A DNA stretch of 64,000 nt. Source: Macrostomum lignano. Lineage: Eukaryota. The position numbers were made by a program, and so were the translations under genes. The stretch lies in contig NIVC01001799.1 of the NCBI GenBank assembly GCA_002269645.1, forward strand, positions 95,347 through 159,346, given 5' to 3'. Below the pieces are notes generated by a model, which was given only the letters and a program-made list of their open reading frames with translations, had not been told where the DNA came from and ran no database searches. Every line of letters starts with the position of its first letter. The stretch's first letter is position 1. Shown here one piece after another: positions 10,301 to 57,790 of the stretch.

Positions 10301-13300
10301 TTTTTCGATACATATCGGTGTCATCTTTACCATTTAGCATTTTTCGATACATATCGGTGTCATCTTTGCCATTTAGAATTTTTTTCGATACATATCGGTG
10401 TCATCTTTACCATTTAGCGTTTTTTTATTCATATCGGTGTCATCTTTACCATTTAGCATTTTTCGATACATATCGGTACAATTCGATACATAGAGATAGT
10501 TATATCGTGCTCCTCATACCCTCAAACTAGGCACCTCTGTCTACTGTCTGGACCGCGAATGCGTGCCCCGCGTGCTGGGCATCGACCCCACCGAGTACCG
10601 ATTCAAGATGGCCCTGGTGAATCGCAAATACGAAGAGGTGCTGCACATGGTGCGCCACGCTAAGCTGGTTGGCCAGGCTCTCATCGCCTACCTGCAGCGC
10701 AAAGGCTACCCGGAGGTGGCGCTGCACTTTGTCAAAGACGAGCGCACCAGATTTGGCCTGGCCGTCGAATGCGGCAACCTTGACGCCGCCCTGGAGAGCG
10801 CCCGGGCCCTTGACGACAAGCAGTGCTGGGAGCGGCTGGGCGAGCTGGCCCTGGCCCACGGCAACCACCAGATGGTGGAGATGGCCTACCAGCGCACTAA
10901 GAATTTCGACAAGCTGGCCTTTCTATACCTGATTAGCGGCCAGCTGGACAAGCTGCGCAAGATGATGCGCATAGCTGAGATTCGCAAGGACACCAGCGGC
11001 CACTTCCAGATGGCTCTGCTGCTTGGCGACGTGTCCGAGCGTGTCCGAGTTCTGCGCACCTGCGGCCAGACCGGCCTGGCTGGCCTCACCGCCGCCGCGC
11101 ACGGCCTGCAGGAGGCCGAACCGGGCGCCGCCGACGATCCGGCGGCTGGCCCGCCGACGGTGACGCCGCCGCCGAACGCTTCGCTGCTGCAGCCGCCCTG
11201 CCCGCTGCGCAGCCAGGACTCCAACTGGCCGTTGCTAACCGTTACTAAGGACTTTTTCGAGGCCGCCATGCGAGCCAGGGGCGCCGGTGGAACTGCCGGA
11301 GCCGCCGCCGCCGCTGTCGCATCAGCCGGGCCGGCGTCCGCTGTGGCCGCCGTCGAAGTCGAAGAAGCCGAAGTCGGCAGCGGCTGGGGCGACGACGAAG
11401 ACGACGAGAACGCATCCAAGGGCGGCGCCAAAGGCGAAGGCTCCGACGTCGAAGATGAGGAGGGCGACGGCTGGGAGGTCGACGACGATTTGGACTTGCC
11501 AGCCGACGCCGGCGGTCACGACTCTGCGGCTGGCGGTGGCGGCTACGTGCCGCCCGTGCGCGGCCCGCCTCCCAGGCAGGTCTGGACTGCCGGCTCCCAG
11601 CTGGCTGCCGATCACGCCGCTGCCGGCAGCTGGGAGTCCGCGATGAGGCTGCTTGCGCAACAGGTTTGGCTTTGCAGACCTTAGGTGTCTTGCTTAGGTC
11701 ACTCTAATTGTCACTCCGCGTATTAGGTCACTCTAATTGTCACTCCGCGTATTAGGTCACTCTAATTGTCACTCCGCGTATTAGGTCACTCTAATTGTCA
11801 CTCCGCATATTAGGTCACTCTAATTGTAACTCCGTGTCCTACGACACTAATTGTCACTCCGCATATTAGGTCACTCTAATTGTCACTTCGCGTGTTAGGT
11901 CACTCTAATTGTCACTCCACTGACTCTTTCAAACCGCTTGCAATTCTTCAGGTCGGCGTGGCCCGCTTCGAGCCGCTCAAGCCGCTGTTCGTAGCCGCCT
12001 ACGCCAGGTCCCGGGCCTGCCTGCCCACCCTGGCCGGCTCGCCGCCTCTCTTTGCCGCCCCTCTGCGCAACTGGAAGGAGGCCGGCAGCGGCGGCCAGCG
12101 CGGAGGCGGCGGCGGACTGCCAGCGGTGGGCATCCGGCTCCGTCAGCTGCTGGACCGGCTGCAGACTGCCTACGGTTTGACTACTCGCGGCAACTTTGCC
12201 GATGCTGTTGATCGATTCCGTCAGTGCCTGCTGGGCGTGCTGATGCTGGTTGTCACTAGCAACCAGGTGAGTTTACGAAGGAGAAATAGATTTATCTATA
12301 GATATTGTCGACTTATCTATAGCTGATTTAGATTCATCTGTGGATATTGTAGATTCATCTGTGGATATTGTAGATTCATCTATAGATATTGTAGATTCAT
12401 CTATAGATATTGTAGATTCATCTATAGATAATGTAGATTCATCTATAGATAATGTAGATTCATCTGTGGATATTGTAGATTCATCTGTCGATATTGTAGA
12501 TTCATCTGTGGATATTGTAGATTCATCTGTCGATATTGTAGATTCATCGAGAGCTAAGAATAGATCTTGTTAACTTATCTATAGATATTGTATATTCATC
12601 CATAGACACTTTAAGCTTATCTATAGAGATAGTGTCGATCAATCAGTAGATAATGATAATTATCAGGAGATTGACGTATATGGTCTAAAAGTCGACAATC
12701 TATAGACACTGTCTACAATCTAGAGCACATCAGCTAAACTATTTCTTAACTTCTATTCGCAGGAGGTGGCGGAGGCCAAGCAGCTCATTGAGGTGTGCCG
12801 CAACTACATAGTAGGCCTGCAGATGGAGCTGGCCCGCAAGGCTCTGCCTCGGACTGAGGAGATTCGCTCAGCCGAAATGGCCTGCTATTTCACTCACTGC
12901 GACCTGCAGCCAACCCACACTATGCTGACTGTCCGTTCGGCTTTGAAGATTCTCTACAAGCTGCGCAACTTCGCCACCGCTGCCATGTTCGCCAGGCGCC
13001 TGCTTGAGCTCGGCCCCAAGCCCGAGGTGGCCAACGAGACTCGGAAAATCTTGCAGACCTGCGAGAAGAATCCAACCGACGCCAGACAGTTGAACTACGA
13101 TCCGCACAATCCGTTCGACATCTGCGCCGCCTCCTACGTGCCTATTTATCGGGGCAGGCCGCTTGTGAAGGATCCGCTGTCCGGGGCCTGCTATGCTCCC
13201 GAGTTTGCCGGCCAGCTCTGCCGGGTCACTCAGGTATGTAATGTCCCTCTGACATATCACTCCGTGCCTACTGTCACTCTGACATATCACTCCGTGTCTA

Positions 13301-14064
13301 CTGTCTACTGTCACTCTGACATGTCACTCCGTGTCTAGCGTTACTCTTACATGTCACTCCGTGTCTAGCGTTACTCTTACATGTCACTCCGTGTCTAGCC
13401 TCACTCTGACATATCACTCCGTGTCTACTGTCACTCTGACATGTCACTCCGTGTCTACTGTCACTCTGACATGTCACTCCGTGTCTACTGTCACTCTGAC
13501 ATTTCACTCCGTGTCTACTGTCACTCTGACATGTCACTCCGTGTCTAGCGTCACTCTGACATGTCACTCTGTGTCTAGTGTCACTCTGACATGTCACTCT
13601 GTGTCTAGTGTCACTCTGACATCTCACTCTGTGTCTAGTGTCACTCTGACATCTCACTCCGTGTCTAGCGTCACTCTTACATATCACTCCGTGTCTAGTC
13701 TCACTCTGACATGTCACTCCGTGTCTAGCGTCACTCTTACATGTCACTCCGTGTCTAGTCTCACTCTGACATGTCACTTCATGTCTAGTGTCACCCCACC
13801 TTGTCACTCTGCCACGTCAACTCCAAATCTAGTGTCAATCCGCCAACTCTTTCTGGATCCAATGTCACTGCCATGTCACTCCATGCTAAAATCACCCCAC
13901 CATGTCACTTTACCTTGTCCCTCTGCATCTAATTTCACTCTGGCATGTTCCTACAATTTCTTGCGCTTTATTAAATGTCACCCTGTACTCTTGTGCCATT
14001 GCAGTGCACGGAGATCGGCAAGGATGTCACGGGCTTGAAAATCAGCGCTCATCAATCGCACTGA
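4308..14064 (+). CDS. COPA: Coatomer subunit alpha (alpha-COP), 9 exons, about 1240 aa
   Basis: Exons: 4308-4347, 6773-7305, 7389-7823, 8205-8687, 9832-10084, 10531-11663, 11952-12266, 12763-13233, 14005-14064. All introns are GT-AG with consistent phases; the total of 3723 nt gives 1240 aa + stop. The N-terminus [23 protein letters not shown], the WD40 repeats, [28 protein letters not shown] and the C-terminus [13 protein letters not shown] all match the alpha-COP family. Confidence 0.97.
4664..5022. mobile_element. MITE with 91-bp terminal inverted repeats and 9-bp target-site duplication (Mutator-like, non-autonomous) in COPA intron 1
   Basis: 4664-4754 (GGCAGTGCTTATCCCC...) is the reverse complement of 4932-5022 with only about 4 mismatches. 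ATTTATAAT is directly repeated at 4655-4663 and 5023-5031. Confidence 0.9.
7839..8120 (+). repeat. 20-bp minisatellite (GTAGCTGAGATCCCATTCCG) in COPA intron 3
   Basis: Direct tandem copies visible. Confidence 0.95.
8830..9790 (+). repeat. Composite minisatellite (core CCTGATCCCTAATATC with CCTAAT / CTGGAGAGTT / CTGAGCAGTT variants) in COPA intron 4
   Basis: Tandem copies visible. Confidence 0.95.
10090..10480 (+). repeat. About 39-bp minisatellite (ATACATATCGGTGTCATCTTTACCATTTAGCATTTTTCG) in COPA intron 5
   Basis: Degenerate tandem copies visible. Confidence 0.9.
11692..11915 (+). repeat. 29-bp minisatellite (TAGGTCACTCTAATTGTCACTCCGCGTAT) in COPA intron 6
   Basis: Tandem copies visible. 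Confidence 0.93.
12326..12548 (+). repeat. 21-bp minisatellite (GTAGATTCATCTGTGGATATT / ...CTATAGATATT) in COPA intron 7
   Basis: Tandem copies visible. Confidence 0.93.
13238..13795 (+). repeat. 30-bp minisatellite (ATGTCACTCCGTGTCTACTGTCACTCTGAC) in COPA intron 8
   Basis: Tandem copies visible. Confidence 0.95.
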
Positions 14065-15983
14065 GTGATGAAATAAAGTACATTGAACAATTATAAACTC
14101 TGCTTCTTGATTGAATCTTCTTCCGCCTAGAAGATTCTTTATCTTAGCAAATTAAATGAACAGTTTCTTCTTTGCTGCTTCTGTCTGCTACAATCAGACA
14201 CATTGTGCTGATGTGTGACTGACAGGTGATTTGGGGAATCAAGCTTATTGTCAAGCACGAGTTTGTCTGTCAGCACTAAGCCGCATGCACTCTTTAACTT
14301 CCTCATCTATTAAATTGTAGATCCCCTTTATATAAAATCACAAAAATGCCAACAGGTTCATACAGTAATTCAAGCAAATTTTCAACTTCATTATTTCAGT
14401 TTTTAGGCAGTAAAAGTTTTGTTTGTTTTCTCTTTGTTAGATAAACAATTATTGGCCTGTTGCTGCTTTTGTGTTGCCTGTCTGTTGGTTGGCTGTTGTT
14501 GTTTTTTTAGTTTATTACTATATTGCCTGTCCTCTCTGCCCCTGAGTCCCCCCTGGTCAGGAGACTCACTCGGTGGTTTGCTTGTATCTGTGTGCGTCTC
14601 CTTATCAAGTTATAATTCACCCGCAAATATTTCGGTGTCTGTCATTTACCTTAGTCCCAGAGAATAATAATTCATATTTATTGATCCCAGTAAATTTCTC
14701 TACTCCCAACAATATGAGCGTAATATGCTTAGTGTGCTACTATTTGTCCGCTAACAGTAGTAGCGTGTTGCGAAGTTTATTTTTTTGATAGATTCTATTA
14801 TTAGCTGAATGGGCTATGGATTTAATTCAATTTTTTATGATTTATGATTAATGATTACTAATTATAATTGTTTGCAATGTAATAAAACCTTTGTTTGTCT
14901 GCGCGGCTACTCTCACTATAACTCACATAACCATACATACCTAATCGGTTTTTGCGTGTGAAGACCAAAACATTTCTGTTATTTTGCTGTCTGCCTGTTT
15001 TGCTTAGTCTTCTCGCATCTGACACTGAGGGTAGCCATGGAGTTGAAAAAGTTTATTAGGCATATTATAGCAAAACTGTTCGAGTGTTGTTATTGACAAA
15101 TAAATAAATATTACCATTATTACTATGGTCCTATTCCGACACCTGTTAGCTTTTGATCTGAAATATTAATTATAGCCTATAAAAGCTAGGCTAGGCTAGG
15201 CTATCTTGATAAATAGTGTTTATAATGATAGGTTGGCTTGAATGTGTTGACTTATTTTTTCGCGTAATATAGTTTTATACGATACATATCGGCAGTTGGC
15301 TGAGTACCTAACAAAGACTGTACATCTATACCTACCAACTGTCACAGATCCACCCGCGCCACGTTGAAAAAAACAAATCCGGAAAAGGTGCGATAATAAA
15401 TACTTAAGGCGCGAATTCAAATGCTTTTTTCTAAGAAAGTTTTCGTCCAGCGTATTGCAATTGTATACATAATGGAATATCGCGACTCTGTTTAAAATAA
15501 AGTACACGACGTCTATGTCCCGCTCAGCATCCATCATCAACATCCGGGAACAAATTTACCCCGGCTGCTGAATCAACAAATGGCTGATCGCATGCGAGCT
15601 GTCCATTCAGTCCCATTGTGATATCGTCTTTTTATATTCTTTTAGATTTAGGCCCGATAGATTCTTCTTATCATAATAGGATGATGCTTCTCTGACAGCG
15701 GCACTGAGCTGCACGCACAGGGCGGAAAGAATCGCATTCAGCTGTAAAACTGCTCATGCTGTGCAGGGACTGCATGGCTGATCTGTTTCCGCGATTATAA
15801 AACATAAGAATAAGCTCGTTTAGTGCACTGATCGAGTTTGTGAGGAACGGTTTGCCTCTGTTTATTACTTTTGACTGATTCCTAGGCAAAGGAAGGCTTC
15901 TAGAGAGACGCTGGAGTGCCAAATGTCAGTTTTTATTACATTTAACAATCAACATTTCTAAAATTATAGTAGAGGCAGATACT

Positions 15984-17350
15984 GACAGACACTGAGACAG
16001 ATGCTGCACGAGACAGACAAGATACTAAAACAGGACACTGAGACAGATGCTGCACGAGACAGGCACTGAGACAGACAAGATACTAAAACAGGACACTGAG
16101 ACAGATGCTGCACGAGACAGGCACTGAGACAGACAAGATACTAAAACAGGACACTGAGACAGATGCTGCACGAGACAGATAAGATACTAAAACAGGACAC
16201 TGAGACAGATGCTGCACGAGACAGACAAGATACTAAAACAGGACACTGAGACAGATGCTGCACGAGACAGACAAGATACTAAAACAGGACACTGAGACAG
16301 ATGCTGCACGAGACAGACAAGATACTAAAACAGGACACTGAGACAGATACTGCACGAGACAGGCACTGAGACAGACAAGATACTAAAACAGACACTGAGA
16401 CAGATGCTGCAAGAGACAGGCACTGAGACAGAAAAGATACTAAAACAGACACTGAGACAGATACTGCACGAGACAGGCACTGAAATAGACAAGATACTAA
16501 AACAGACACTGAGACAGATACTGCAGAGACAGGCACTGAGACAGATACTGCAGAGACAGGCACTGAGACAGACACTGAGACAGACACTGAGACAAACACT
16601 GAGACAGGCACTGAGACAGTCACTGAGACAGACACTGGGACAGACACTGAGACAGACACTGAGACAGGCCCTGAGACAGGCACTGAGACAGTCACTGAGA
16701 CAGACACTGAGACAGTCACTGAGACAGGCACTGAGACAGACACTGAGACAGGCACTAAGACAGTCACTGAGACAGATGCTGCACGAGACAGACAAGATAC
16801 TAAAACAGGACACTGAGACAGATGCTGCACGAGACAGACAAGATACTAAAACAGGACACTGAGACAGATGCTGCACGAGACAGACAAGATACTAAAACAG
16901 GACACTGAGACAGATACTGCACGAGACAGGCACTGAGACAGACAAGATACTAAAACAGACACTGAGACAGATGCTGCAAGAGACAGGCACTGAGACAGAA
17001 AAGATACTAAAACAGACACTGAGACAGATACTGCACGAGACAGGCACTGAAATAGACAAGATACTAAAACAGACACTGAGACAGATACTGCAGAGACAGG
17101 CACTGAGACAGATACTGCAGAGACAGGCACTGAGACAGACACTGAGACAGACACTGAGACAAACACTGAGACAGGCACTGAGACAGTCACTGAGACAGTC
17201 ACTGAGACAGACACTGAGACAGTCACTGAGACAGGCACTGAGACAGACACTGAGACAGTCACTGAGACAGACACTGAGACAGTCACTGAGACAGGCACTG
17301 AGACAGACACTGAGACAGGCACTAAGACAGTCACTGAGACAGACAAGAAA
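15984..17350 (+). repeat. Composite satellite built on the 12-bp unit GACAGGCACTGA/GACAGACACTGA plus longer units, with a 567-bp higher-order duplication
   Basis: Tandem copies visible. Identical repeat-derived ORFs start at 16404 and 16971 (offset 567). Confidence 0.93.
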
Positions 17351-18540: not shown

Positions 18541-18838
18541 ATTGTGATTGAACAAGTGCACCCGGCTGCTCAAGTCGCACGGCCCCAATCCACAGCTGCA
18601 AAGAAAACTCGATGCAATTTGGTGCCTTAAAGCGACTTGAGGAACTTGCTTAAGACGACGATTCTGTCATGAAATTGTTGCCATGCCAGTCACGTCCGCC
18701 AGCAGGCCAATCAGCTGGAAGTGAAACTTTCTGCTCCCCTGGTACTGCCCACAGAATCTGATCTCTACGTGTACTCCGGTGACCTGGGTCTTATGGGTGC
18801 TTGCTTTTTCTGGACCGGCTTTCGGTAGAGGGAACATG

Positions 18839-19300
<462 letters not shown>

Positions 19301-19696
19301 AGACACCGATAGCGGCAAGCCGCAGGCATTATCAAGCACTGAATCGGGCTCCACACGGCGGGAGCAGCTCATTCAGTTTCGAATATCTGAGCCGATCAGG
19401 GCTCATAAACCAGTTGGCTTTCGCGGGAGCCCCCGAGGGCGCCTGATCGAAACTGAGGCGATCGGGTCGAGCCTTCCGCTCCCGCTGCCGGGGAAATGTC
19501 TCCAGCCTATCCTGGGAAATAAATCATGGTTTTGTGTTCAAGAGAAGCAGCCCAGTTTTTCTTTTGAGCTGTATAAAAGAAATAATAATTTTTTGTATTT
19601 GCTCAAGGGAAACAGTCAAGTGGAAAGGCCTAGGTAGAAAGCCAAGATAATTAAGTGAGCTGTGATCTATCTGGAAATCTAGGAATCCTGGGAGTC

Positions 19697-20859: not shown

Positions 20860-22713
20860 ATGGACCAGCAGCAGGTCAACTGCCTGTCGGTGGCACCGTC
20901 GAACTACACGGATGTGCTGCACTACAAGCCTCTCAGAGCCGCTCTCGCGCTGGCGTGGACAGGCGTCGGGCTGATGATGTTCGCAGGAAATCTGCTGGTG
21001 ATCATCACAGTCTGGCTGAATAAAGCGATGCACACGCCTACGAACTGGTACATCTTGAATCTGGCTGTCACGGATCTGCTGGCCTCGGTTGTGGTTGTAC
21101 CGTTCAAAGGTCTGCAGCTGATGGGGCCGTGCTGGATGGCCGCGGCCGTGTTCAACAGAGTCGGCTGTCCGCTCATCAGCTTCTTCCTGATGCTGCTGGT
21201 GTTCACGAGCCTGCTCACCCTGGTTGCCATCTGCATTGAGCGGTGAGTGGGATCTGGGTTTCTTCCGAGTAAGGGATTATCTCACTTCCTCCTCATGAGG
21301 ATGGAGATCCCTCTCATCTCCATCCTCACGAAAGGAAAACTGAGAGTGACTAGACTGGGAGTGACTGAGAATAGAGAGAGAGAGAGTGACTAGACTGGGA
21401 GTGACTGAGAATAGTGAGAGAGTGACTAGACTGGGAGTGACTGAGAATAGAGAGAGAGTGACTAGACTGGGAGTGACTGAGAATAGTGAGAGAGTGACTA
21501 GACTGGGAGTGACTGAGAATAGTGAGAGAGTGACTAGACTGGGAGTGACTGAGAATAGAGAGAGAGTGACAAGACTGGGAGTGACTGAGAACAGTGAGAG
21601 AGTGACTAGACTGGGAGTGACTGAGAATAGTGAGAGAGTGACTAGACTGGGAGTGACTGAGAATAGAGAGAGAGTGACTAGACTGGGAGTGACTGAGAAT
21701 AGTGAGAGAGTGACTAGACTGGGAGTGACTGAGAATAGAGAGAGAGTGACAAGACTGGGAGTGACTGAGAATAGTGAGAGAGTGACTAGACTGGGAGTGA
21801 ATGAGAATAGTGAGAGAGTGACTAGACTGGGAGTGACTGAGAATAGAGAGAGAGTGACAAGACTGGGAGTGACTGAGAATAGTGAGAGAGTGACTAGACT
21901 GGGAGTGAATGAGAATAGTGAGAGAGTGACAAGACTGGGAGTGACTGAGAATAGTGAGAGAGTGACTAGACTGGGAGTGACTGAGAATAGAGAGAGAGTG
22001 ACTAGACTGGGAGTGACTGAGAATAGAGAGAGAGTGATAAGACTGGGAGTGACTGAGAATAGTGAGAGAGTGACTAGACTGGGAGTGACTAAGAATAGTG
22101 AGAGAGTGACTAGACTGGGAGTGACTGAGAATAGTGAGAGAGTGACTAGACTGGGAGTGACTGAGAATAGTGAGAGAGTGACTAGACTGGGACTGACTGA
22201 AAATAGAGAGAGAGTGACAAGACTGGGAGTGACTGAGAATAGTGAGAGAGTGACTAGACTGGGAGTGACTGAGAATAGTGAGAGAGTGACTAGACTGGGA
22301 GTGACTGAGAATAGAGAGAGAGTGACTAGACTGGGAGTGACTGAGAATAGTGAGAGAGTGACTAGACTGGGAGTGACTGAGAATAGAGAGAGAGTGACAA
22401 GACTGGGAGTGACTGAGAATAGTGAGAGAGTGACAAGACTGGGAGTGACTGAGAATAGTGAGAGAGTGACTAGACTGGGAGTGACTGAGAATAGTGAGAG
22501 AGTGACTAGACTGGGAGTGACTGAGAATAGAGAGAGAGTGACAAGACTGGGAGTGACTGAGAATAGAGAGAGAGTGACAAGACTGGGAGTGACTGAGAAT
22601 AGAGAGAGAGTGACTAGACTGGGAGTGACTGAGAATAGAGAGAGAGTGACAAGACTGGGAGTGACTGAGAATAGTGAGAGAGTGACTAGACTGGGAGTGA
22701 CTGAGAATAGAGA

Positions 22714-22769
<56 letters not shown>

Positions 22770-25700
22770 GAGAGAGAGAGAAGAGAGGTCACGGCGTGTT
22801 TAAAAAAATCAAAGACTTAATTAATTTAATATGGGCTACCGGTTTCGAGCCTCTGGGCTCTTCGTCAGGCCAAAAAATCTGTGTGTCATGCAATTCAAGT
22901 TGGTCTTTTAAGTATTATTTTTCTTAGTCTGATAGAATTGATGAGTAGTTGTACATATGAGGGATGTACATTTAAAACCCTGTTTTGCCTAGCTCTAACT
23001 TGTCCCAGAGGCTTTCCACCATTCATTTTAAACGACAGTATATTTGTTATAAAAAATTGTTATTTCGAAGTACTATACGATATGCGATACTATACGATTA
23101 GATGAAATGCCGGTATTGGGGGTAGGAGCATAAAAATCAATATTGAGCATACAATTAAGCAGTTTGAATAAAATAAAATAAATGACACGTGAATAAATAT
23201 TGTACTTTAATAGGGTAAAAATAGCGCATTGGTTAAAATGATTCAATGTTTCCTGGCTGAGACTTGAACTTATTGGGAGCCAGGAGGCTCTGTAAGTTAC
23301 GTTGCCGTGTAAATGCGGGCATTATGCGGGAGCCTGGTTTATTTTGTAGCTTATCAAAGTTTTTAGCAATCTCGTTGGCAAGTCAGACCGTAGATGGGTG
23401 AAAAGGAAGGACCATTGGGATGGGTCGGAGAAGATGATTGTCGACCCTGATGTTCGTACCTGGCGGTTTGTCAGTCCCTAGTCTAGCCAGTCACTAGGCA
23501 GCCTACTTTTATCGATTTTGATATTTAAGTGCCAGCTAAATCTAAAGTTGAAATTCGATTGGCTAGATGGGTACAAGTGAGCAGTGAACGCAAACACAAG
23601 TATGAGAAGTATGAGATTGCTGGGTGTCAGGCTTAGCATCATTCTTAAAGCCATAGTTTTAATTCTGAAATTTCGTCGAAGCATTGATTTCCCTATAAGA
23701 AGCTTCCGCTCCGAAGCCGCTTTCCTAACTAATCCTTTGAGAGTCTTTAGAACCTTTTAGGTATCTCAGTATCTCAGGCTTGATAAAGTATTTAGTATAA
23801 AGTTCTCAATGAACTTTCACCAGCACGACGACACAGTGGCAACTCTTTCTGCCCCTCTGCAGGCGCACAGTCCCCCTAAACCCTTTCTGCCCTTCTGCGT
23901 GCGCACAGCCCCCCCCCCCTAAACCCTTTCTGCCCCCTGCGTGCGCACAGCCCCCCCCAAACCCTTTCTGTCCCTCTGCGTGCGTACAGCCCCCCCAAAC
24001 CCTTTCTGTCCCTCTGCGTGCGCACAGCCCCCCTAAACCCTTTCTGCCCCTCTGCGTGCGCACAGCCCCCCCAAACCCTTTCTGTCCCTCTGCGTGCGCA
24101 CAGCCCCCTTAAACCCTTTCTGCCCCTCTGCGTGCGCACAGCCCCCTCCAAACCCTTTCTGTCCCTCTGCATGCGGACAACCCCCCCCCCCCACCAAAAA
24201 ACACCTACTCCCCTACTCTCACCCCTAACCCGAGTGCGCATTCCACAAAATAGAATATGTGTACAACTGCGAACTTTTCACAACCCCCTCAACTTGCAGT
24301 TTCCTGGCAATCGTGCACCCGCTGCGCAGCAGGCTATTTCAATCGAATCGTCGCACCTGCCTATTCATTTTGCTTACCTGGGCTGTGCGAGCGCCTTCTG
24401 CCTCGTGCAGGCTCTGCACGCCAAGCCGACACCATTCTATGGGGTGAGTCAGTACGGCGAGATGCGCAACCAGCATTGCCTGGATAGCCTGGACAATGTC
24501 GGCCGAAATGTCTACGTGCTGTCCTCGTTCGTCCTGCTGTTCCTGTGCCCCCTGCTGGTCGTGGCCTACACCTCCTGCGCCATCGTGCTGGCTCTAGTTC
24601 GACCCGCTCCAGTTCAACTCGAAGCCTGTCCGGGCGGCGGCGCCAGCGGCGGCAGCGGCGGAGGCGGAGGAGCCGGCGGCGGAAGCAACAGAGAGGAGAG
24701 CAAGCGGAAGGTAGTCTCAGCATCTGGTTGAATCTGACCCAAATAATTTCATACTTAAGGAATATAATGCATAGAGAATCTCATCTTGGAGAATCTTACC
24801 TGGGAATCTCACCCTATAGAATCTCACCCCATAGAATCTCACCCTATAGAATCTCACCCTATAGAATCTCACCCTATAGAATCTTACCCTATAGAATCTC
24901 ACCCCATAGAATCTCACCCTATAGAATCTCACCCTATAGAATCTCACCCTATAGAATCTCACCCTATAGAAACTCAACCTATAGAATCTCACCGAAGATA
25001 ATCTCACCCTAGAAATCCCTAGAAATAGAGATTCTCGTCATAGATCACCGTAATCACCGTAGATCACCTAAGATAATCTCACCGCAGATAATCTCACCCT
25101 AGAATATCTCACCCGAGAGAATCTTAACCCAGTGAATCTCAACCCTATCTATTCCCATTACTGCTTTGAAACGATGCAATTAAAAAATCAATCCTAAGCT
25201 CCTAATTAGCAACGGGCACAGGCCAGCACAGTCCAACTCGAAGATCCCACGATCAAAGAACACTTTGAGGCCGCGATCGATCTGCAAAACAACTTAAACT
25301 CTTTGGCTTGCCCTGCCTCAGTGGTTCCCGAGCTTCCACTCTGGCAAAAAACGGTGTTTTGAAATTCGAATCTTACAGAGCGAAAACAGAATGGCCATTC
25401 GGGAGAAAATCTTACGGAATAAAATTTCCCGATAAACTTTCGAAGCGGCCGACGGGGATGGGATGGTCCGAGATGCACACATGCAGCTTCACACTGAACC
25501 CTCAGGCTCTTACAATCCCGCTTCATCAAGCGCGTCTAAGAGAAGTTTCTCAAATTTCTCAAATTTCCAAACTTGCTCAGAAATAGAAATTGACAGCTCC
25601 CTTCTGAATAAGCGAGTGCTCAAGCTGTGTGCTTCCAAGCCCCCGAGGCTGAACACTGAGATTATAGAAATCTAATTCTATCGTTCATTTTAACTCACAG

Positions 25701-26216
25701 GTGGCCAAGATGATGGTGGTGGTGGCCTGTCTGTACCTGGTGTCCTGGGTGCCCTGGTACTCAACTAACGTGATCGGCCTGGTGTACAAGAACATGTACG
25801 ACAGGAACTACGGCTTGCTGATGGTGCTGCTGCATCTCATCGGCTTCGTGAACTCCATGAGCAACCCGATTGTGTACTATTTCATGTCGCAGAGGTTCCG
25901 TCTGGGGTACCGTCGGGCCCTTTGCTGCTGCTGTCCCGGCGCTGTCGGCGGCAGCAGCGGAGGCGGCGGCACCGTGAGCACCTACAGTCAGCACCACCAG
26001 CAGCTGCTCAAGCAGTCAACCACTCTGAAGTCGGCACCGATGCACAGACAACAGCGGAAGAGCACTGAAGAGTCCTCTGCGATCTTCTGCGAGAGGCAGG
26101 CGAAGGCCGATGACGGAGCTGGGAGCCGCGCGGAGCAGCACTTCGAGATGCAATCCCGCTGCGGCCGCCCTGCCGACTGCGGCAGCGACTCCTTTCGCGA
26201 TGACGGCTACGTCTGA
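20860..26216 (+). CDS. Class A (rhodopsin-like) peptide-type GPCR, 3 exons, about 436 aa; one apparent -1 frameshift at about 24387
   Basis: Exons: 20860-21242 (alternative ATG at 20797), 24300-24710, 25701-26216, all GT-AG. Motifs: N-glycosylation site NYT, GNLLVI (TM1), TPTNWYILNLAVTDLL (TM2), C at the top of TM3, ERFLAIVHPL, KRKVAKMM, SWVP, NSMSNPIVY...RFR. One base is missing in TM4 (TWAV/ASAF). The ligand family cannot be assigned by eye. Confidence 0.9.
21340..22785 (+). repeat. 36-bp minisatellite (ACTAGACTGGGAGTGACTGAGAATAGTGAGAGAGTG) ending in (GA)n, GPCR intron 1
   Basis: Highly homogeneous tandem copies. Confidence 0.97.
23840..24175 (+). repeat. About 38-40-bp C-rich minisatellite (CTCTGCGTGCGCACAGCCCCCCTAAACCCTTTCTGCCC), GPCR intron 1
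   Basis: Tandem copies visible. Confidence 0.9.
24775..25135 (+). repeat. 15-bp minisatellite (TATAGAATCTCACCC), GPCR intron 2
   Basis: Tandem copies visible. Confidence 0.92.
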
Positions 26217-26219
26217 CTG

Positions 26220-28015
26220 GGCTGACCAGAAATGACAACTGACCAGAAATAACAACTGACCAGAACTGACACCTGACCAGAACTGACACCTGACCAGAAC
26301 TGACACCTGACCAGAACTGACAACTGACCAGAAATGCCACCTGACCAGAACTGACACCTGACCAAAATTGACACCTGACCAGAAATGACACCTGACCAGA
26401 AATAACACCTGACCAGAACTGACACCTGACCAGAACTGACACCTGACTAGAACTGACATCTGACCAGAAATGACACCTGACCAGAAATGACATCTTACCA
26501 GAACTGACACCTGACGAGAAATGATACCTGACAAGAAATGACATCTGACCAGAACTGATATCTGACCAGAAATGACATCTGACCAGAACTGACACATGAC
26601 CAGAAATGACACCTGACCAGAAATGACACCTGACCAGAAATGATACCTGACAAAAAATGACATCTGACCAGAAATGACACCTGACCAGAAATGACACCTG
26701 ACCAGAACTGACACCTGACCAGAAATGATACCTGACAAAAAATGACATCTGACCAGAACTGACACCTGAGCAGAACTGACACCTGACTAGAACTGACATC
26801 TGACTAGAACTGACACATGACCAGAAATGACACCTGGCCAGAACTGACACCTGACCAGAAATGATACCTGACAAAAAATGACATCTGACCAGAACTGACA
26901 CCTGACCAGAACTGACACCTGACTAGAACTGACATCTGACCAGAACTGACACCTGACCAGAACTGACACCTGACCAGAAATGAAACCTGACCAGAAATGA
27001 CATCTGACCAGAACTGACATCTGACCAGAACTGACATCTGACCAGAACTGACACCTGACCAGAACTGACACCTGACTAGAACTGACTCCTGACCAGAACT
27101 GACACCTGACTAGAACTGATACCTGACCAGAACTGACACCTGAACAGAAATGACACCTGACCAGAAATGACATCTGACCAGAACTGACACCTGACCAGAA
27201 ATGACATCTGACCAGAACTGACATCTGACCAGAACTGACATCTGACCAGAACTGACACCTGACCAGAACTGACACCTGACCAGAACTGACTCCTGACCAG
27301 AACTGACACCTGACCAGAACTGACACCTGACCAGAAATGACATCTGACCAGAAATGACACCTGACTAGAACTGACATTATCTGACCAGAACTGACACCTG
27401 ACCAGAAATGACATCTGACCAGAACTGACACCTGACCAGAGCTGACACCTGACCAGAACTGACATCTGACCAGAACTGACACCTGACCAGAAATGACATC
27501 TGACCAGAACTGACACCTGACTAGAACTGACATCTGACCAGAACTGACATCTGACCAGAACTGACACCTGACCAGAACTGACACCTGACTAGAACTGACA
27601 CCTGACTAGAAATGACATCTGACCAGAACTGACACCTGACCAGAAATGACATCTGACCAGAACTGACACCTGACTAGAACTGACACCTGACTAGAACTGA
27701 CATCTCACCAGAACTGACATCTGACCAGAACTGACACCTGACCAGAACTGACACCTGACTAGAACTGACACCTGACTAGAACTGACATCTGACCAGAACT
27801 GACATCTGACCAGAACTGACACCTGACCAGAACTGACACCTGACTAGAACTGACACCTGACTAGAAATGACATCTGACCAGAACTGACACCTGACCAGAA
27901 ATGACATCTGACCAGAACTGACACCTGACTAGAACTGACACCTGACTAGAAATGACACCTGACCAGAACTGACACCTGACCAGAAATGACATCTTACAAG
28001 CAGTGACACCTGACA
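26220..28015 (+). repeat. 17-bp minisatellite (TGACCAGAACTGACACC) beginning directly after the GPCR stop codon
   Basis: About 100 tandem copies visible. Confidence 0.97.
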
Positions 28016-28324: not shown

Positions 28325-29290
28325 TCTATGACTGAGGATGAATTCTATGACTGAGGATGAATTCTATGACTGAGGATGAATTCTATGACTGAGGATGAAT
28401 TCTATGACTGAGGATGAATTCTATGACTGAGGATGAATTCTTTGACTGAGGATGAATTCTTTGACTGAGGATGAATTCTATGACTGAGGATGAATTCTAT
28501 GACTGAGGATGAATTCTTTGACTGAGGATCAATTCTTTGACTGAGGATCAATTCTTTGACTGAGGATCAATTCTTTGACTGAGGATAAATTCTTTGACTG
28601 AGGATGAATTCTATGACTGAGGATGAATTCTTTGACTGAGGATCAATTCGATGACTGAGGATCAATTCGATGACTGAGGATCAATTCGATGACTGAGGAT
28701 GAATTCTTTGACTGAGGATCAATTCTATGACTGAGGATCAATTCTATGACTGAGGATGAATTCTATGACTGAGGATCAATTCTATGACTGAGGATCAATT
28801 CTATGACTGAGAATCAATTCTATGACTGAAGATCAATTCTATGACTGAGGATCAATTCTATGACTGAGGATCAATTCGATGACTGAGGATCAATTCGATG
28901 ACTGAGGATCAATTCTATGACTGAAGATCAATTCTATGACTGAGGATCAATTCTATGACTGAGGATGAATTCTATGACTGAGGATCAATTCTATGACTGA
29001 GGATCAATTCGATGACTGAGGATCAATTCTATGACTGAGGATGAATTCTATGACTGAGGATGAATTCTTTGACTGAGGATCAATTCTATGACTGAGGATC
29101 AATTCTATGACTGAGGATCAATTCTATGACTGATGATCAATTCTATGACTGATGATCAGTTCTATGACTGAGGATCAGTTCGATAACTGAGAATGAATTC
29201 TATTATTGAGGATCAATTCTATGACTAAGGATCAATTTTATGACTGAAGATCAATTCTATGACTGAGGATGAATTCTTTGACTGAGGATC
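28325..29290 (+). repeat. 19-bp minisatellite (TGACTGAGGATGAATTCTA)
   Basis: Tandem copies visible. Confidence 0.97.
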
Positions 29291-29460
29291 ATATTATATA
29301 TGTTAAAAAATTTTACGAGCTAAGGAACTCATGCTCAATGACGTTTTTCTCATCTATATTAAACATCCATGTTCTGTGCGGATTATGGAAAATCGCTTTT
29401 GTAGACATTTTCCTGGAGAGAATAATCGCATATCCAGTGAATAAAGACTACAGCTTCTTA

Positions 29461-32400
29461 AGAACTCGAAACTTCAGGAACTCGAAACTTCAGGAACTCG
29501 AAACTTCAGGAACTCGAAGCTTCAGGAACTCAAAACTTAAGGAACTCAAACTTCAGGAACTCGAAACTTCAGGAACTCGAAACTTCAGGAACTCGAAACT
29601 TCAGGAACTCAAACTTCAGGAACTCGAAACTTCAGGAACTCGAAACTTCAGGAACTCGAAACTTCAGGAACTCGAAACTTCAGGAACTCGAAACTTCAGG
29701 AACTCAAACTTCAGGAACTCGAAACTTCAGGAACTCGAAACTTCAGGAACTCGAAACTTCAGGAACTCGAAACTTCAGGAACTCGAAACTTCAGGAACTC
29801 GAAACTTCAGGAACTCGAAACTTCAGGAACTCAAACTTCAGGAACTCGAAACTTCAGGAACTCGAAACTTCAGGAACTCAAACTTCAGGAACTCGAAGCT
29901 TCAGGAACTCGAAACTTAAGGAACTCGAAACTTCAGGCACTCGAAGCTTCAGGAACTCGAAACTTCAGGAACTCAAACTTCAGGAACTCGAAGCTTCAGG
30001 AACTCGAAACTTCAGGCACTCGAAACTTCAGGCACTCGAAACTTCAGGAACTCGAAACTTAAGGAACTTGAAACTTCAGGCACTCGAAACTTCAGGAACT
30101 CGAAACTTCAGGAACTCGAAACTTCAGGAACTCGAAACTTCAGGAACTCGAAACTTCAGGAACTCGAAACTTCAGGAACTCAAACTTCAGGAACTCAAAG
30201 CTTCAGGAACTCGAAACTTAAGGAACTTGAAACTTCAGGCACTCGAAACTTCAGGAACTCGAAACTTCAGGAACTCGAAACTTCAGGAACTCGAAACTTC
30301 AGGAACTCGAAACTTCAGGAACTCAAACTTCAGGAACTCAAACTTCAGGAACTCGAAACTTCAGGAACTCAAACTTCAGGAACTCGAAACTTCAGGAACT
30401 CAAACTTCAGGAACTCAAACTTCAGGAACTCGAAACTTCAGGAACTTGAAACTTCAGGAACTCGAAACTTCAGGAACTCGAAACTTCAGGAACTCGAAAC
30501 TTAAGGAACTTGAAACTTCAGGCACTCGAAACTTCAGGAACTCGAAACTTCAGGAACTCAAACTTCAGGAACTCAAACTTCAGGAACTCGAAACTTCAGG
30601 AACTTGAAACTTCAGGAACTCGAAACTTCAGGAACTCGAAACTTCAGGAACTCGAAACTTAAGGAACTCGAAACTTCAGGCACTCGAAACTTCAGGAACT
30701 CGAAACTTAAGGAACTCGAAACTTAAGGAACTCGAAACTTAAGGAACTCGAAACTTCAGGAACTCAAAACTTCAGGCACTCGAAACTTCAGGCACTCGAA
30801 GCTTCAGGAACTCGAAACTTAAGGAACTCGAAACTTTAGGCACTCGAAACTTCAGGAACTCGAAACTTCAGGAACTCAAACTTCAGGAACTCGAAACTTC
30901 AGGAACTCGAAACTTCAGAAACTCAAACTTCAGGAACCGAAACTTCAGGAACTCGAAACTTCAGGAACTCGAAACTTCAGGAACTCAAACTTCAGGAACT
31001 CGAAACTTCAGGAACTCAAACTTCAGGAACTCGAAACTTCAGGAACTTGAAACTTCAGGAACTCGAAACTTAAGGAACTCGAAACTTCAGGCACTCGAAA
31101 CTTCAGGAACTCGAAACTTAAGGAACTCGAAACTTAAGGAACTCGAAACTTAAGGAACTCGAAACTTCAGGAACTCAAAACTTCAGGCACTCGAAACTTC
31201 AGGCACTCGAAGCTTCAGGAACTCGAAACTTAAGGAACTCGAAACTTTAGGCACTCGAAACTTCAGGAACTCGAAACTTCAGGAACTCAAACTTCAGGAA
31301 CTCGAAACTTCAGGAACTCGAAACTTCAGAAACTCAAACTTCAGGAACCGAAACTTCAGGAACTCGAAACTTCAGGAACTCGAAACTTCAGGAACTCAAA
31401 CTTCAGGAACTCGAAACTTCAGGAACTCGAAACTTCAGGAACTGGAAACTTTACGTACTCGAAACCTCACGTACTCGAAAAAAGTTAGACACTTCACAAG
31501 CTCGAAACTTCAGGAACTCAAACTTAAGGAACTCGAAGCTTCAGGAACTCGAAACTTCAGGAACTCGAAACTTCAGGAACTCGAAACTTCAGGAACTCGA
31601 AACTTCAGGAACTCGAAACTTCAGGAACTCGAAACTTCAGGAACTCGAAACTTCAGGAACTCGAAACTTCAGGAACTCGAAACTTCAGGAACTCAAACTT
31701 CAGGAACTCGAAACTTCAGGAACTCGAAACTTCAGGAACTGGAAACTTTACGTACTCGAAACCTCACGTACTCGAAAAAAGTTAGACACTTCACAAGCTC
31801 GAAACTTCAGGAACTCAAACTTAAGGAACTCGAAGCTTCAGGAACTCGAAACTTCAGGAACTCGAAACTTCAGGAACTCGAAACTTCAGGAACTCGAAAC
31901 TTCAGAAACTCAAACTTCAGGAACCGAAACTTCAGGAACTCGAAACTTCAGGAACTCGAAACTTCAGGAACTCAAACTTCAGGAACTCGAAACTTCAGGA
32001 ACTCGAAACTTCAGGAACTGGAAACTTTACGTACTCGAAACCTCACGTACTCGAAAAAAGTTAGACACTTCACAAGCTCGAAACTTCAGGAACTCAAACT
32101 TAAGGAACTCGAAGCTTCAGGAACTCGAAACTTCAGGAACTCGAAACTTCAGGAACTCGAAACTTCAGGAACTCGAAACTTCAGGAACTGGAAACTTTAC
32201 GTACTCGAAACCTCACGTACTCGAAAAAAGTTAGACACTTCACAAGCTCGAAACTTCAGGAACTCGAAGCTTCAGGAACTCGAAACTTCAGGAACTCGAA
32301 ACTTCAGGAACTCGAAACTTCAGGAACTCAAACTTCAGGAACTCAAAACTTCAGGAACTCGAAACTTCAGGAACTCGAAACTTCAGGAACTCGAAACTTC

Positions 32401-32620
32401 AGGAACTCAAACTTCAGGAACTCGAAACTTCAGGAACTCGAAACTTCAGGAACTCGAAACTTCAGGAACTCAAACTTCAGGAACTCGAAACTTCAGGAAC
32501 TCGAAACTTCAGGAACTGGAAACTTTACGTACTTGAAACCTCACGTACTCGAAAAAAGTTAGACACTTCACAAGCTCGAAACTTCAGGAACTCGAAAGTT
32601 CAGAAACTCGAAAGTTCAAC
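29461..32620 (+). repeat. 16-bp satellite (CGAAACTTCAGGAACT) whose monomer contains a perfect nGAAnnTTCnnGAAn heat-shock element; higher-order cassettes present
   Basis: Tandem array directly visible; the monomer parses as cGAAa-cTTCa-gGAAc-t. Confidence 0.96.
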
Positions 32621-33455
32621 GGTTTATTGAGCAAATGAAGCTAAACAGCCAACATTTTAATCAAATTCAGTGTCTGTGGAGAAACCAGGAAAAAAACAGG
32701 TCAAGCTTTTTTGCAGAGTTGAATTTTTACGATGTTTTCAACTTGCTCATAACGGAATCGATGACCAAACTCAAATGCTATGCAGCCAGTAATTCGATGC
32801 CTGCTTAATCCGGATCAATCAAGAAATGCACAGGAAGTAAGCAAATCCTGCATAGCAACTACGGGCGGATAAACTGGCTGATTGATAGTTGATTCCTAGA
32901 TGCCCGGAATTATCCATGTTGCCATGCAGTGAGAATTATTGCCAAGGAAGCGGAAGGACTGATCCAGGCGATGAGGCACCGCTATTGATGCGCTGCAGAC
33001 GGGACAGCACAGGCTAATGAGGCCGCACTTGAGAGTCTTCCTCAGTTTAGGAGGAATCCCGAGAACCCTCTCGTCTCCTTTTCTTTCAGCTTCACCTGAT
33101 GGCGGAACTGTTGAAAGCAGGTCTCAGCAAGGGGGGGGGGAGTTGAGCTCAGAGTTTCTCTTAATAAAATCTATCGAGCCGCAAAATCATTCCGGAAAAC
33201 AGAGTTGCGAAGCATATCAGCTTGGCTGGTCCTTGTCTCAGATTGCGATAATTAACATTCTCGTCTAGTTGGTTTATGATGCTAAACTGCATCGACAACA
33301 AGATGGAGGAGCAAAGCGATTTACGAGCGATTTGTTGACAGTAATGAATCTGCACTTTTGATGGTTTGGTAATCACTTCCCGGCCGGCCTATTTGGTTAA
33401 GGGTATTAAATAATTGTAATAACCTCAAGTCATGGGTTTATTACAGAATAAATAA

Positions 33456-34054
<599 letters not shown>

Positions 34055-34489
34055 GGAAAGTGGAACAGTCGCGTTAACCAATGAATCTAGGTTAAAATGG
34101 AAAACATAACACACTAAAAGTCTGCCATTAATTACCAGTTAAACAAAGGCATGAAGAAACAAGCAAAGGTGATTCAGAATTTATATTTTAGCAATGAAGG
34201 CTCTCACCACCTGCCGGTTGCATAACTAGCATTGACGAAAACAAAACTCAGAATAAAAACAAGGCGTACAAATAAAGCAATACAGGTGGATAGAATGGCG
34301 GGATCGAGGCATTGGCCAGAGGCGGGAGGATCAGGTCAGGAACTACGCACGCTTATGGTCAGCACGACATAGAAATCGTTGGAAACAGAAATCGTGTTAG
34401 ATTTTTAAAATCGACAAGGAGAGATGGGGAACAAAAAAACACCAACAATAAACAGGCCTATCCTGACTAGGTAATAAAAGCTTCTGTTT

Positions 34490-34945
34490 ACCTTAGATAC
34501 GGCTATACGACCCATAGCAACTGATTGATTGCCTTGGATACCATCTTGAAAACCATAGCAACGATTGTTTCCCTTAGATACGGCTATACGGCCCATAGCA
34601 ACGAATTATCTACCTTGGAAACCGCCATTCAAGCCATAGCATCGGATTGTTTAGGTTGGATACGGCCATTCGAGCCAAGGCAACAGATTGTTTCCCTTGG
34701 ATACGGCCTTTCGAGCCAAAGCAACTGATTGTTTCTGTTTGATAAGGCCATAGTAACGGATTTTTTACCTTAGATACGGCTATACGGTCCATAGCAACGA
34801 ATTGTCTATCATTGATCGATACCGCCATTCAAGCCATAGCAACGGGTTGTTTGCGTTGGATACGGCCTTTATAGCCATAGCAACGGCTTGTTTATCTCGG
34901 ATGCGGCTAAACGGCCCATAGCAACGGTTAGTTTACCTTGGATAC
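34490..34945 (+). repeat. Degenerate about 40-bp tandem repeat (TTGGATACGGC...CCATAGCAAC...)
   Basis: GGATACGGC and CCATAGCAAC recur at about 40-bp spacing, roughly 11 times. Confidence 0.8.
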
Positions 34946-35134
34946 GGGTCATTTTTCCTAACAAAACCAACCTCAACACAAAAAACGCACTAGCAGTTCA
35001 ATAAGAAGCAACAAAAACCACAATACACATAAAATGAACAGAACATAGGTATACATACTGCCAGCATATAAATATAAGCAAATACATCCAATGGAATCTG
35101 GGTGGACAAACACTGTAAGCCGCTGCTCAGAACC

Positions 35135-56316
<21,182 letters not shown>

Positions 56317-57004: not shown

Positions 57005-57790
<786 letters not shown>

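Follow-up and report, generated by a model that had tools for sequence, protein, structure and literature searches.

The 64-kb stretch of Macrostomum lignano DNA analysed here (the window) carries, between two genes whose 3' ends converge, a 16-bp minisatellite whose consensus unit contains a complete heat-shock element (HSE). To its left lies a rhodopsin-family GPCR gene on the plus strand, whose stop codon ends at 26216 and which leaves the array 3.2 kb downstream. To its right lies a SEL1L-like gene on the minus strand that starts near 56316, more than 20 kb from the array, and whose C-terminal transmembrane and tail ORF probably ends at 35135, as judged from the ORF list only, with the array some 2.5 kb past this probable stop. 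A first-pass annotation of this DNA had described the same pair, a GPCR gene and SEL1L with 3' ends converging on the array, and we recovered the same arrangement; the array occupies a convergent 3' intergenic region, downstream of both genes and far from both promoters. The features of the region are:

25701 to 26216, plus strand: last coding exon of the rhodopsin-family GPCR (7tm_1; TM6-7 and tail)
26222 to 28014: 17-mer array, 105 copies, in the same intergenic region upstream of the HSE array
28325 to 29291: 19-mer array, 51 copies, same intergenic region
29292 to 29461: left spacer of 170 bp (32% GC, no copy elsewhere in the window) separating the 19-mer array from the HSE array
29462 to 32618, plus strand: 16-bp minisatellite with unit CGAAACTTCAGGAACT (TRF, segmentation, per-position profile)
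32619 to 33455: right flank of 837 bp, unique within the window
33456 to 34055: (ACAG)150, same intergenic region
34485 to 34947: 41-mer array, same intergenic region
35135 to 37247, minus strand: 3' part of the SEL1L-like gene, with Sel1-repeat exons at 36018-36620 and 36771-37247

Tandem arrays make up 41% of the window, in 49 blocks, and 80% of the GPCR-SEL1L intergenic region; the HSE array is not the largest of them, a 12-mer array reaching 3.6 kb. Kinship of the 17-mer and 19-mer units with the 16-mer was considered and rejected, their scores being no better than those of shuffled units. Both flanks of the HSE array are non-coding. The right flank (32619-33455) contains no ORF of more than 83 aa, is not repeated elsewhere in the window and has no Rfam match, and an Rfam scan of the whole 26-36 kb interval (E <=0.1) was likewise without a match. 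Neither 29292-29461 nor 32619-33455 contains LTRs, inverted or direct terminal repeats or TE ORFs, and no second copy of either flank was found within the window, where a single TE was detected, a LINE unrelated to the array that lies 13 kb away from it and is 96-100% identical to M. lignano proteins. A COPA exon, also in the window, has a best match that is 56-58% identical. The minus-strand TATATAA noted in the first-pass annotation is indeed present at 29300-29294, in the 32% GC spacer and about 160 bp from the array edge; the heptamer occurs 15 times in the window, and this copy would point away from the HSE array and into the 19-mer array. No other feature suggestive of a transcription unit or structured element was found.

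TRF reported a single array at 29462-32618 with a period of 16, 200.9 copies and 90% matches, and our own segmentation of its 3,157 bp gave 200 head-to-tail units, degenerate at the array edges, 102 of which are exact copies of CGAAACTTCAGGAACT. The unit parses, as had been proposed, into cGAAa-cTTCa-gGAAc followed by t, and so contains the three contiguous, alternately inverted nGAAn pentamers by which an HSE is defined here (nGAAnnTTCnnGAAn). This 9-position motif is matched exactly in 115 of the 200 units, intact GAAnnTTCnnGAA being present in the 102 consensus units, in ten units with cGAAgcTTC and in three with tGAAacTTC. The earlier reading of well over 100 HSE repeats, with these two variants retaining the motif, is borne out, and the variants that it listed as breaking the HSE are all real: a 1-bp deletion at G2 (30 units), TTC to TTA (18 units) and GAA to GCA (14 units). 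HSE density in the array is 36 per kb and the longest run of consecutive intact units is 10. As a period of 16 bp does not keep the 5-bp register, no HSE extends into a fourth in-register pentamer. The rest of the 64 kb holds no three-pentamer HSE (0.5 expected), and none lies at the promoters of the neighbouring genes within the window.

The HSE was the sole exact match to the unit among some 20 classic motifs scanned. None of its three pentamers (cGAAa, tGAAg and gGAAc) has the AGAA context, which is the one preferred by HSF. Single-stranded array DNA folds less readily than shuffled controls do (z = +2.3), and no hairpin or cruciform potential was found in the array. The cyclic 16-aa translation of the repeat is identical across all three plus-strand frames; searched against 5.8 billion protein clusters, it found no relatives and one weak match (P0121, 41% identity), a search uninformative with regard to the host genome. 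On inspection, P0121 proved to be a degenerate low-complexity repeat on a Logan contig, unrelated to the array, and was set aside. The exact two-unit pattern had no match in metagenome contigs or in prokaryotic genome contigs, a result equally uninformative about the host genome.

A depletion of substitutions at the GAA/TTC positions, which the first-pass annotation had put forward as a check on function, is absent, variants being evenly spread over the monomer. When the nine core (GAA/TTC) positions of the unit were compared with its seven free positions, variant types filled 8 of 36 possibilities in the core and 6 of 28 outside it (Fisher p = 1). Counted by copy, non-consensus calls numbered 93 in the core and 37 at free positions (10.3 versus 5.3 per position), that is, core positions varied about twice as often as free ones. 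Only 58% of the 16-bp slots carry an intact HSE, the per-position profile revealed no constraint at any group of unit positions, and all tests for selection on the HSE across 29462-32618 were negative. Concerted evolution weakens selection on individual monomers, and the lack of constraint is therefore compatible with a function exerted by the array as a whole. The internal organization of the array comprises:

30638 to 31428, plus strand: perfect 380-bp internal duplication (30638-31017 identical to 31049-31428)
31289 to 32189, plus strand: perfect 325-bp duplication (31289-31613 identical to 31865-32189)
31444 to 31502, plus strand: 59-bp block, four diverged units long and lacking an HSE (GGAAACTTTACGTACT CGAAACCTCACGTACT CGAAAAAAGTTAG ACACTTCACAAGCT)

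A higher-order repeat is punctuated by the 59-bp block, which occurs five times (at 31444, 31741, 32020, 32190 and 32518), its copies lying 170-328 bp apart. Two further perfect duplications, of 260 bp each, occur at lags of 297 and 279. The 380-bp duplication includes many HSE-broken units, with only 46% of its 16-bp slots intact, and the intact fractions of 46% and 59% in recent duplications compare with 58% for the whole array. Recent duplications (260-380 bp) do not favour intact units, HSE-broken ones having been copied as readily. With its degenerate edges, its five 59-bp blocks and its perfect duplications, the array has the anatomy of a normal product of slippage and unequal exchange.

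Short-unit tandem arrays are exceptionally abundant in the M. lignano genome, about 15% of whose 764 Mb consists of simple and tandem repeats (PMC5730564). Our simulation gave a probability of 1.45e-4 that an array of a random 16-mer carries the HSE, in agreement with the figure of about 1e-4 per array ventured beforehand. From these two values some 20 chance HSE arrays are expected genome-wide, a rough scaling which treats units as independent and random in composition, and which is good to an order of magnitude only. Against a chance origin, the unit matches a 9-position motif exactly and no other classic motif in our scan, the event has a p of about 0.005 within the window alone, and even a two-pentamer HSE is absent from all 36 other window arrays with a period of at least 13. 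Among UCSC-hosted genomes with annotated Helitrons, a survey located dense clusters of HSEs in three Caenorhabditis genomes only, in Helitrons (PMC6927752), and by that yardstick the 36 per kb of the array is unusual.

Taken together, we consider the array to be an ordinary, essentially neutral M. lignano minisatellite that is incidentally HSF-competent and whose match to the motif arose by chance (probability about 0.65). Short head-to-tail units, higher-order blocks, perfect segmental duplications and variants unconstrained by the embedded motif, all characteristic of minisatellites, were each found here. A founder 16-mer would have happened to contain three inverted nGAAn pentamers and would have been amplified through replication slippage and unequal exchange, the HSE being multiplied passively and not because of being an HSE. 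The by-product would be a locus with as many as about 115 separate trimer sites, spaced at one per 16 bp, none of which extends to a fourth pentamer. That such sites could bind HSF is made credible by experiments in the same species, in which canonical HSEs, defined by exactly the motif that is repeated in the array, were required for the heat induction of LTR retrotransposons, one to four HSEs sufficing for a more than 250-fold response (PMC12801592). Binding of HSF to the array in vitro is thus very likely on our analysis, and heat shock may lead to occupation of the array, provided that its chromatin is open; with 115 HSEs, an accessible array would hardly be inert. Whatever local transcription or HSF titration followed would be a side effect and not a product of selection.

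The alternative closest to the earlier interpretation is that of a selected platform, onto whose intact units HSF trimers would load upon heat shock. The array could so buffer HSF, in the manner of a miniature stress-body nucleator, work as an enhancer inducible by heat, or serve as an upstream activating region; in this last role it would use the minus-strand TATATAA at 29300 to drive a non-coding RNA that crosses the 19-mer array and then the 17-mer array and is antisense to the 3' end of the GPCR gene. The 115 canonical HSEs and their density speak for this possibility, as do the dependence of M. lignano LTR promoters on such elements for their heat response (PMC12801592) and the TATA-like heptamer 160 bp from the array edge, which has the array on its upstream side. 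We nevertheless consider it unlikely. Variants are not depleted at core positions and HSE-broken units have been freely amplified; the array lies downstream of both neighbours and over 20 kb from the SEL1L start; TATATAA is frequent in the window; no pentamer has the AGAA context; and some 20 such arrays are expected by chance. Moreover, two HSE-bearing LTR families of M. lignano showed no heat induction (PMC12801592). What is supported of the earlier interpretation is the presence of canonical three-pentamer HSEs at 36 per kb and, with them, a very likely HSF binding in vitro; the core constraint is absent, and the comparison with a stress-body locus is not supported by size, 3.2 kb being about 300-fold below the roughly 1 Mb of the Drosophila AGAAT satellite and further still below the multi-megabase human HSat3.

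The motif might instead have been inherited from a TE promoter rather than matched by chance, an internal segment of an HSE-bearing LTR (Mag, CsRN1, Gmr1) or of a Helitron-like element having been tandemly amplified. TE-internal segments commonly seed minisatellites. In addition, M. lignano LTR retrotransposons have gained HSEs independently at least four times (PMC12801592) and Caenorhabditis Helitrons carry dense, partly overlapping HSE clusters (PMC6927752). A TE origin is however improbable given flanks that, within the window, lack LTRs, terminal repeats, TE ORFs and a second copy, and given that the sole TE detected is the unrelated LINE. That part of the length of the array, or its perfect duplications, is an assembly artefact seems more improbable still. 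Assemblies of M. lignano have been described as redundant and as difficult to build owing to simple repeats (PMC12801592, PMC5730564), and several stretches of 260-380 bp within the array occur as 100% identical copies. However, the distinctive variant units in the duplicated blocks keep a consistent nested order, and unique sequence borders the array at either end; an assembly error would in any case alter the copy number and not the nature of the repeat. Least probable, and in our view scarcely credible, is that the unit serves another GAA/GGAA reader, whether IRF/ISRE-like (GAACTCGAAACT) or with an ETS-type GGAA core, or a structural role of the DNA. The junction-spanning GAACTCGAAACT differs at a single position from the ISRE consensus GAAANNGAAACT and each unit holds a GAAACT half-site and a GGAA core; however, the exact match is to the HSE only, the ISRE and ETS consensus forms being unmet, the single strand folds less than shuffled controls, and no group of positions is constrained.

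A neutral minisatellite would provide a clean cautionary example: among roughly 10^5 tandem arrays, a handful of perfect, highly multiplied 9-position matches is to be expected, and such a motif match alone would say nothing about function. The more consequential possibility, that the array is a working HSF-recruiting locus which would bind on the order of 100 HSF trimers per copy on heat shock and either fire a repeat-derived non-coding or antisense transcript or measurably buffer free HSF, is in our estimation decidedly unlikely. If true, it would represent a compact minisatellite of complete canonical HSEs, not of pentamer mimics, and a third independently evolved, structurally different satellite tuning of the heat-shock response after those of primates and Drosophila; HSF titration by satellites has been described for only two lineages, both with Mb-scale pentamer satellites. 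It would also allow a direct test of the number of clustered HSEs needed for sink, enhancer or promoter action. The locus is small and flanked by unique sequence and can therefore be cloned and deleted, and M. lignano is the one flatworm for which stable transgenesis, a validated reporter assay for HSEs and published RNA-seq after heat shock are all available.

Human HSat3, (GGAAT)n, and the Drosophila AGAAT satellite, for which HSF sequestration and heat-shock transcription have been proposed (PMC9032817; bioRxiv 10.64898/2026.08.24.746661; PMC11526998), share with the array a tandem organization, a unit that resembles the nGAAn pentamer and many candidate HSF sites in cis. They are, however, 5-bp direct repeats that merely mimic an HSE, whereas the 16-bp unit of the array holds the complete inverted three-pentamer element. 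They also extend over about 1 Mb to several Mb of pericentric or Y heterochromatin, whereas the array spans 3.2 kb between two genes. It is neither a pentameric direct repeat nor, going by the size of the local copy, a heterochromatic array of Mb scale, as stress-body satellites are. With Caenorhabditis Helitrons, Arabidopsis ONSEN and the Mag, CsRN1 and Gmr1 LTRs of M. lignano it has in common a canonical nGAAnnTTCnnGAAn multiplied by a repeat-generating process (PMC6927752; PMC12801592). The TE-borne HSEs, present as one to four per LTR or as Helitron clusters, lie upstream of a TE promoter and have spread by transposition; the array is associated with no recognisable mobile element, as far as its flanks could be compared within the window, and its copies arose through local tandem amplification. 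TCAST1 of Tribolium is a 360-bp major satellite whose action depends on siRNA and H3K9me3 rather than on an HSF motif. Euchromatic TCAST1 repeats near genes, with a proposed heat-stress-specific effect on these genes, have been reported, and the array resembles them in being a tandem repeat near protein-coding genes (PMC4537270). The closest likeness is to generic neutral minisatellites, which have the same short unit, degenerate edges, higher-order blocks, unconstrained variants and clustering with unrelated arrays, and from which the array differs only in that its unit coincides with a famous transcription-factor site.

The array, a 16-bp minisatellite occupying 29462-32618, was called by Tandem Repeats Finder as a single block (period 16, 200.9 copies, 90% matches), and dynamic-programming segmentation against CGAAACTTCAGGAACT resolved it into 200 units, 102 of them exact. 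The unit parses as c-GAA-a / c-TTC-a / g-GAA-c followed by one extra T, and a complete heat-shock element (HSE; nGAAnnTTCnnGAAn), the three contiguous, alternately inverted nGAAn pentamers that form the site of an HSF trimer, covers 15 of its 16 bases. The HSE is intact in 115 units (102 consensus, 10 cGAAgcTTC, 3 tGAAacTTC), bearing out the first-pass annotation, which had described a three-pentamer HSE repeated more than 100 times and whose descriptive statements about the array were all confirmed. Sites occur at 36 per kb, the longest unbroken run being 10 units, and no nGAAnnTTCnnGAAn-type HSE was found in the other 60.8 kb of the window, where 0.5 would be expected. Because the period is 16 rather than 15, a fourth in-register pentamer is never present in the array, which is therefore a series of separate minimal trimer sites and not one long cooperative HSE.

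We favor, with a probability of roughly 0.65, the view of the array as a neutral minisatellite founded on a unit that chanced to be a canonical HSE. Slippage and unequal exchange would then have multiplied this 16-mer, carrying the HSE along passively. One line of evidence is the distribution of variants. Of 14 distinct types, eight affect the nine core GAA/TTC positions and the other six the seven free ones, that is, 8 of 36 versus 6 of 28 possible changes (Fisher p = 1); the depletion of substitutions at GAA/TTC proposed earlier as a test was not seen. Counted by copy, non-consensus calls number 93 at core and 37 at free positions (10.3 versus 5.3 per position, copies not being independent events). 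The commonest variants all break the HSE, and are those the annotation had named: deletion of G2 (30 units), TTC to TTA (18) and GAA to GCA (14). The motif is not under constraint in the array. The unit has one CpG, where part of the variation is concentrated (C1 to T, G2 to A, G2 deletion). As the CpG observed/expected ratio of the window is 0.61, ordinary mutational bias may contribute.

The unit map consists of nested blocks, among which exact-match analysis identified the following perfect internal duplications:

30638-31017 = 31049-31428, 380 bp
31289-31613 = 31865-32189, 325 bp
two further duplications in the array, 260 bp

Four strongly diverged, HSE-less units form a 59-bp block that occurs five times between 31444 and 32518. 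Recently duplicated blocks are not enriched in HSEs (46% and 59% intact, versus 58% in the whole array). Such a pattern is characteristic of slippage and unequal exchange that copy whichever units are present.

The simulated chance of an HSE in a given array is 1.45e-4, in agreement with the earlier estimate of order 1e-4, and that of an HSE in any of the window's 37 arrays with a period of at least 13 is p ~0.005; not even a two-pentamer HSE is present in any other array of the window. Simple and tandem repeats take up ~15% of the 764-Mb genome (PMC5730564); dividing that share by the mean block size in the window (538 bp) gives ~2 x 10^5 arrays genome-wide, some three-quarters of them with a period long enough for the motif, and roughly 20 HSE-bearing arrays would be expected without selection (an order of magnitude, assuming independent units and random composition). 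The match is thus more than chance for one array, but not for the genome. We note that the motif was found post hoc, as the annotation acknowledged.

The genes on either side were placed as follows:

ending at 26216, + strand, last exon of a rhodopsin-family GPCR (Pfam)
ending at 35135, - strand, probable transmembrane and tail exon of a SEL1L-like gene (inferred)
36.0-37.2 kb and 51.5-52.0 kb, - strand, Sel1 repeats of the SEL1L-like gene (Pfam)
near 56.3 kb, - strand, signal-peptide-like first exon of the SEL1L-like gene

The Pfam placement agrees with the earlier location of the array between the converging 3' ends of these genes. It sits in an 8.9-kb intergenic region, 3.2 kb beyond the GPCR stop and ~2.5 kb beyond that of the SEL1L-like gene, whose start is over 20 kb away. 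Tandem repeats make up 80% of this region, in the order 17-mer x105, 19-mer x51, 16-mer x200, (ACAG)150 and a 41-mer array. The 17-mer array (1.8 kb, to 28014) begins five bases after the GPCR stop codon; the GPCR 3' UTR is therefore either very short or tandem repeat.

That the array is a selected HSF platform, serving as a sink, an enhancer or the upstream activating region of a minus-strand transcript driven from the TATATAA at 29300, appears unlikely. The motif itself and, by inference, its binding potential stand from the first-pass interpretation; a selected function does not, given a motif without constraint. The 3'-3' position also argues against it, and the minus-strand TATATAA, confirmed at 29300-29294, is an ordinary heptamer present 15 times in the window. 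Since SEL1L is controlled by the ER unfolded-protein response and is not known as a classical target of HSF, having it nearby does little for the case. Size also counts against a platform: the satellites known to nucleate stress bodies, Drosophila AGAAT (~1 Mb) and human HSat3 (multi-Mb), are hundreds of times larger (PMC9032817; bioRxiv 10.64898/2026.08.24.746661; PMC11526998). Derivation from a transposable element is improbable, the flanks giving it no support: neither spacer (29292-29461, 32619-33455) has a second copy in the window, a meaningful ORF or an Rfam match. We regard an assembly artefact in array length or unit order as very unlikely, and consider it least plausible of all that the unit is another factor's site or plays a structural role. 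Among ~20 classic motifs scanned against the unit the HSE was the sole exact match, an ISRE lying one mismatch off across unit junctions, and the single strand showed no folding potential (z = +2.3 versus shuffles). The array is a tandem repeat coinciding with an HSF site.

Tandem arrays account for 41% of the window (49 blocks, 24 of at least 300 bp), the largest being not the HSE array but a 12-mer (CTGTCTCAGTGC) x304 (3.6 kb, 40836-44442). Besides intergenic DNA, they fill introns in COPA, the GPCR and the SEL1L-like gene (e.g. 40836-44442, 21342-22721, 26222-28014). An (ACAG)n/(CTGT)n family occupies four sites on both strands (18838-19305, 33456-34055, 39518-40116, 57008-57789), and longer units resembling its derivatives (GAGACAGACACT, CTGTCTCAGTGC) form kb-scale arrays at 15972-17345 and 40836-44442, suggestive of families of related arrays rather than independent origins. 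Arrays 30 kb apart, at 24774-25145 (GPCR intron) and 55144-55628 (near the SEL1L-like 5' end), share a GAATCTCACC core and appear to form a dispersed minisatellite family.

An apparently full-length non-LTR retrotransposon (LINE) with open ORFs lies at 45568-51323 (+):

46551-47504, + strand, ORF1-like ORF
47501-48991, + strand, AP endonuclease
48988-51210, + strand, reverse transcriptase and RNase H

It is inserted in a 15-mer minisatellite (TCTCCCCATCCCCAG; flanking arrays 45369-45567 and 51331-51714) within an intron of the SEL1L-like gene. TCCCTAATCTCCC occurs on both sides and may be a target-site duplication; the element's 3' tail is short and CTAAGT-like. Its reverse transcriptase/RNase H ORF is 96% (70% coverage) and 100% (20% coverage) identical to M. 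lignano UniRef proteins, so the element is probably young; this match places the window in M. lignano or a sibling species. The best relative of the COPA (coatomer alpha) exons at 6763-13338 (+) is 56-58% identical over its full length, though the protein collection includes M. lignano proteins; either the public proteome lacks this gene model or the DNA belongs to a sibling Macrostomum. Upstream of COPA, a 444-aa ORF (1246-2580, -) carries a Gly-rich stretch, encoded by a (GCC)53 array (2245-2403), and then a Gln/Pro-rich low-complexity region.

In M. lignano, a free-living flatworm, the HSF hypothesis is cheaply testable, as data and tools already exist. Ustyantsev et al. (2025), searching with the same regular expression as the first-pass annotation, reported four LTR-retrotransposon families with one to four canonical HSEs and more than 250-fold induction at 37 C; an isolated LTR promoter in a transgenic reporter lost its heat induction once the HSEs were mutated, and another two, single-HSE families showed no induction (PMC12801592). 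The HSE therefore works in M. lignano near a promoter but is not sufficient alone. From the motif and this function, the array is probably biochemically competent for HSF and may be incidentally occupied after heat shock. That paper mentions no tandem or satellite repeats (PMC12801592), and as far as can be seen an HSE minisatellite in M. lignano is previously unreported. Among the UCSC-hosted genomes with annotated Helitrons surveyed by Garrigues et al., HSE-rich 1-kb windows were conspicuous in three Caenorhabditis genomes alone, and the C. elegans clusters lie exclusively within Helitrons (PMC6927752). The array is unusual by that yardstick; the tandem-repeat load of M. lignano, far above that of a typical genome, is a sufficient explanation. 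Compared with element-borne HSE clusters, the array could work alike but does not belong with them, as it does not lie in a mobile element. It could likewise work as HSat3 and AGAAT do without being one of them, those satellites having a pentamer unit and Mb-scale heterochromatin whereas the array is a kilobase-scale repeat of a 16-bp unit.
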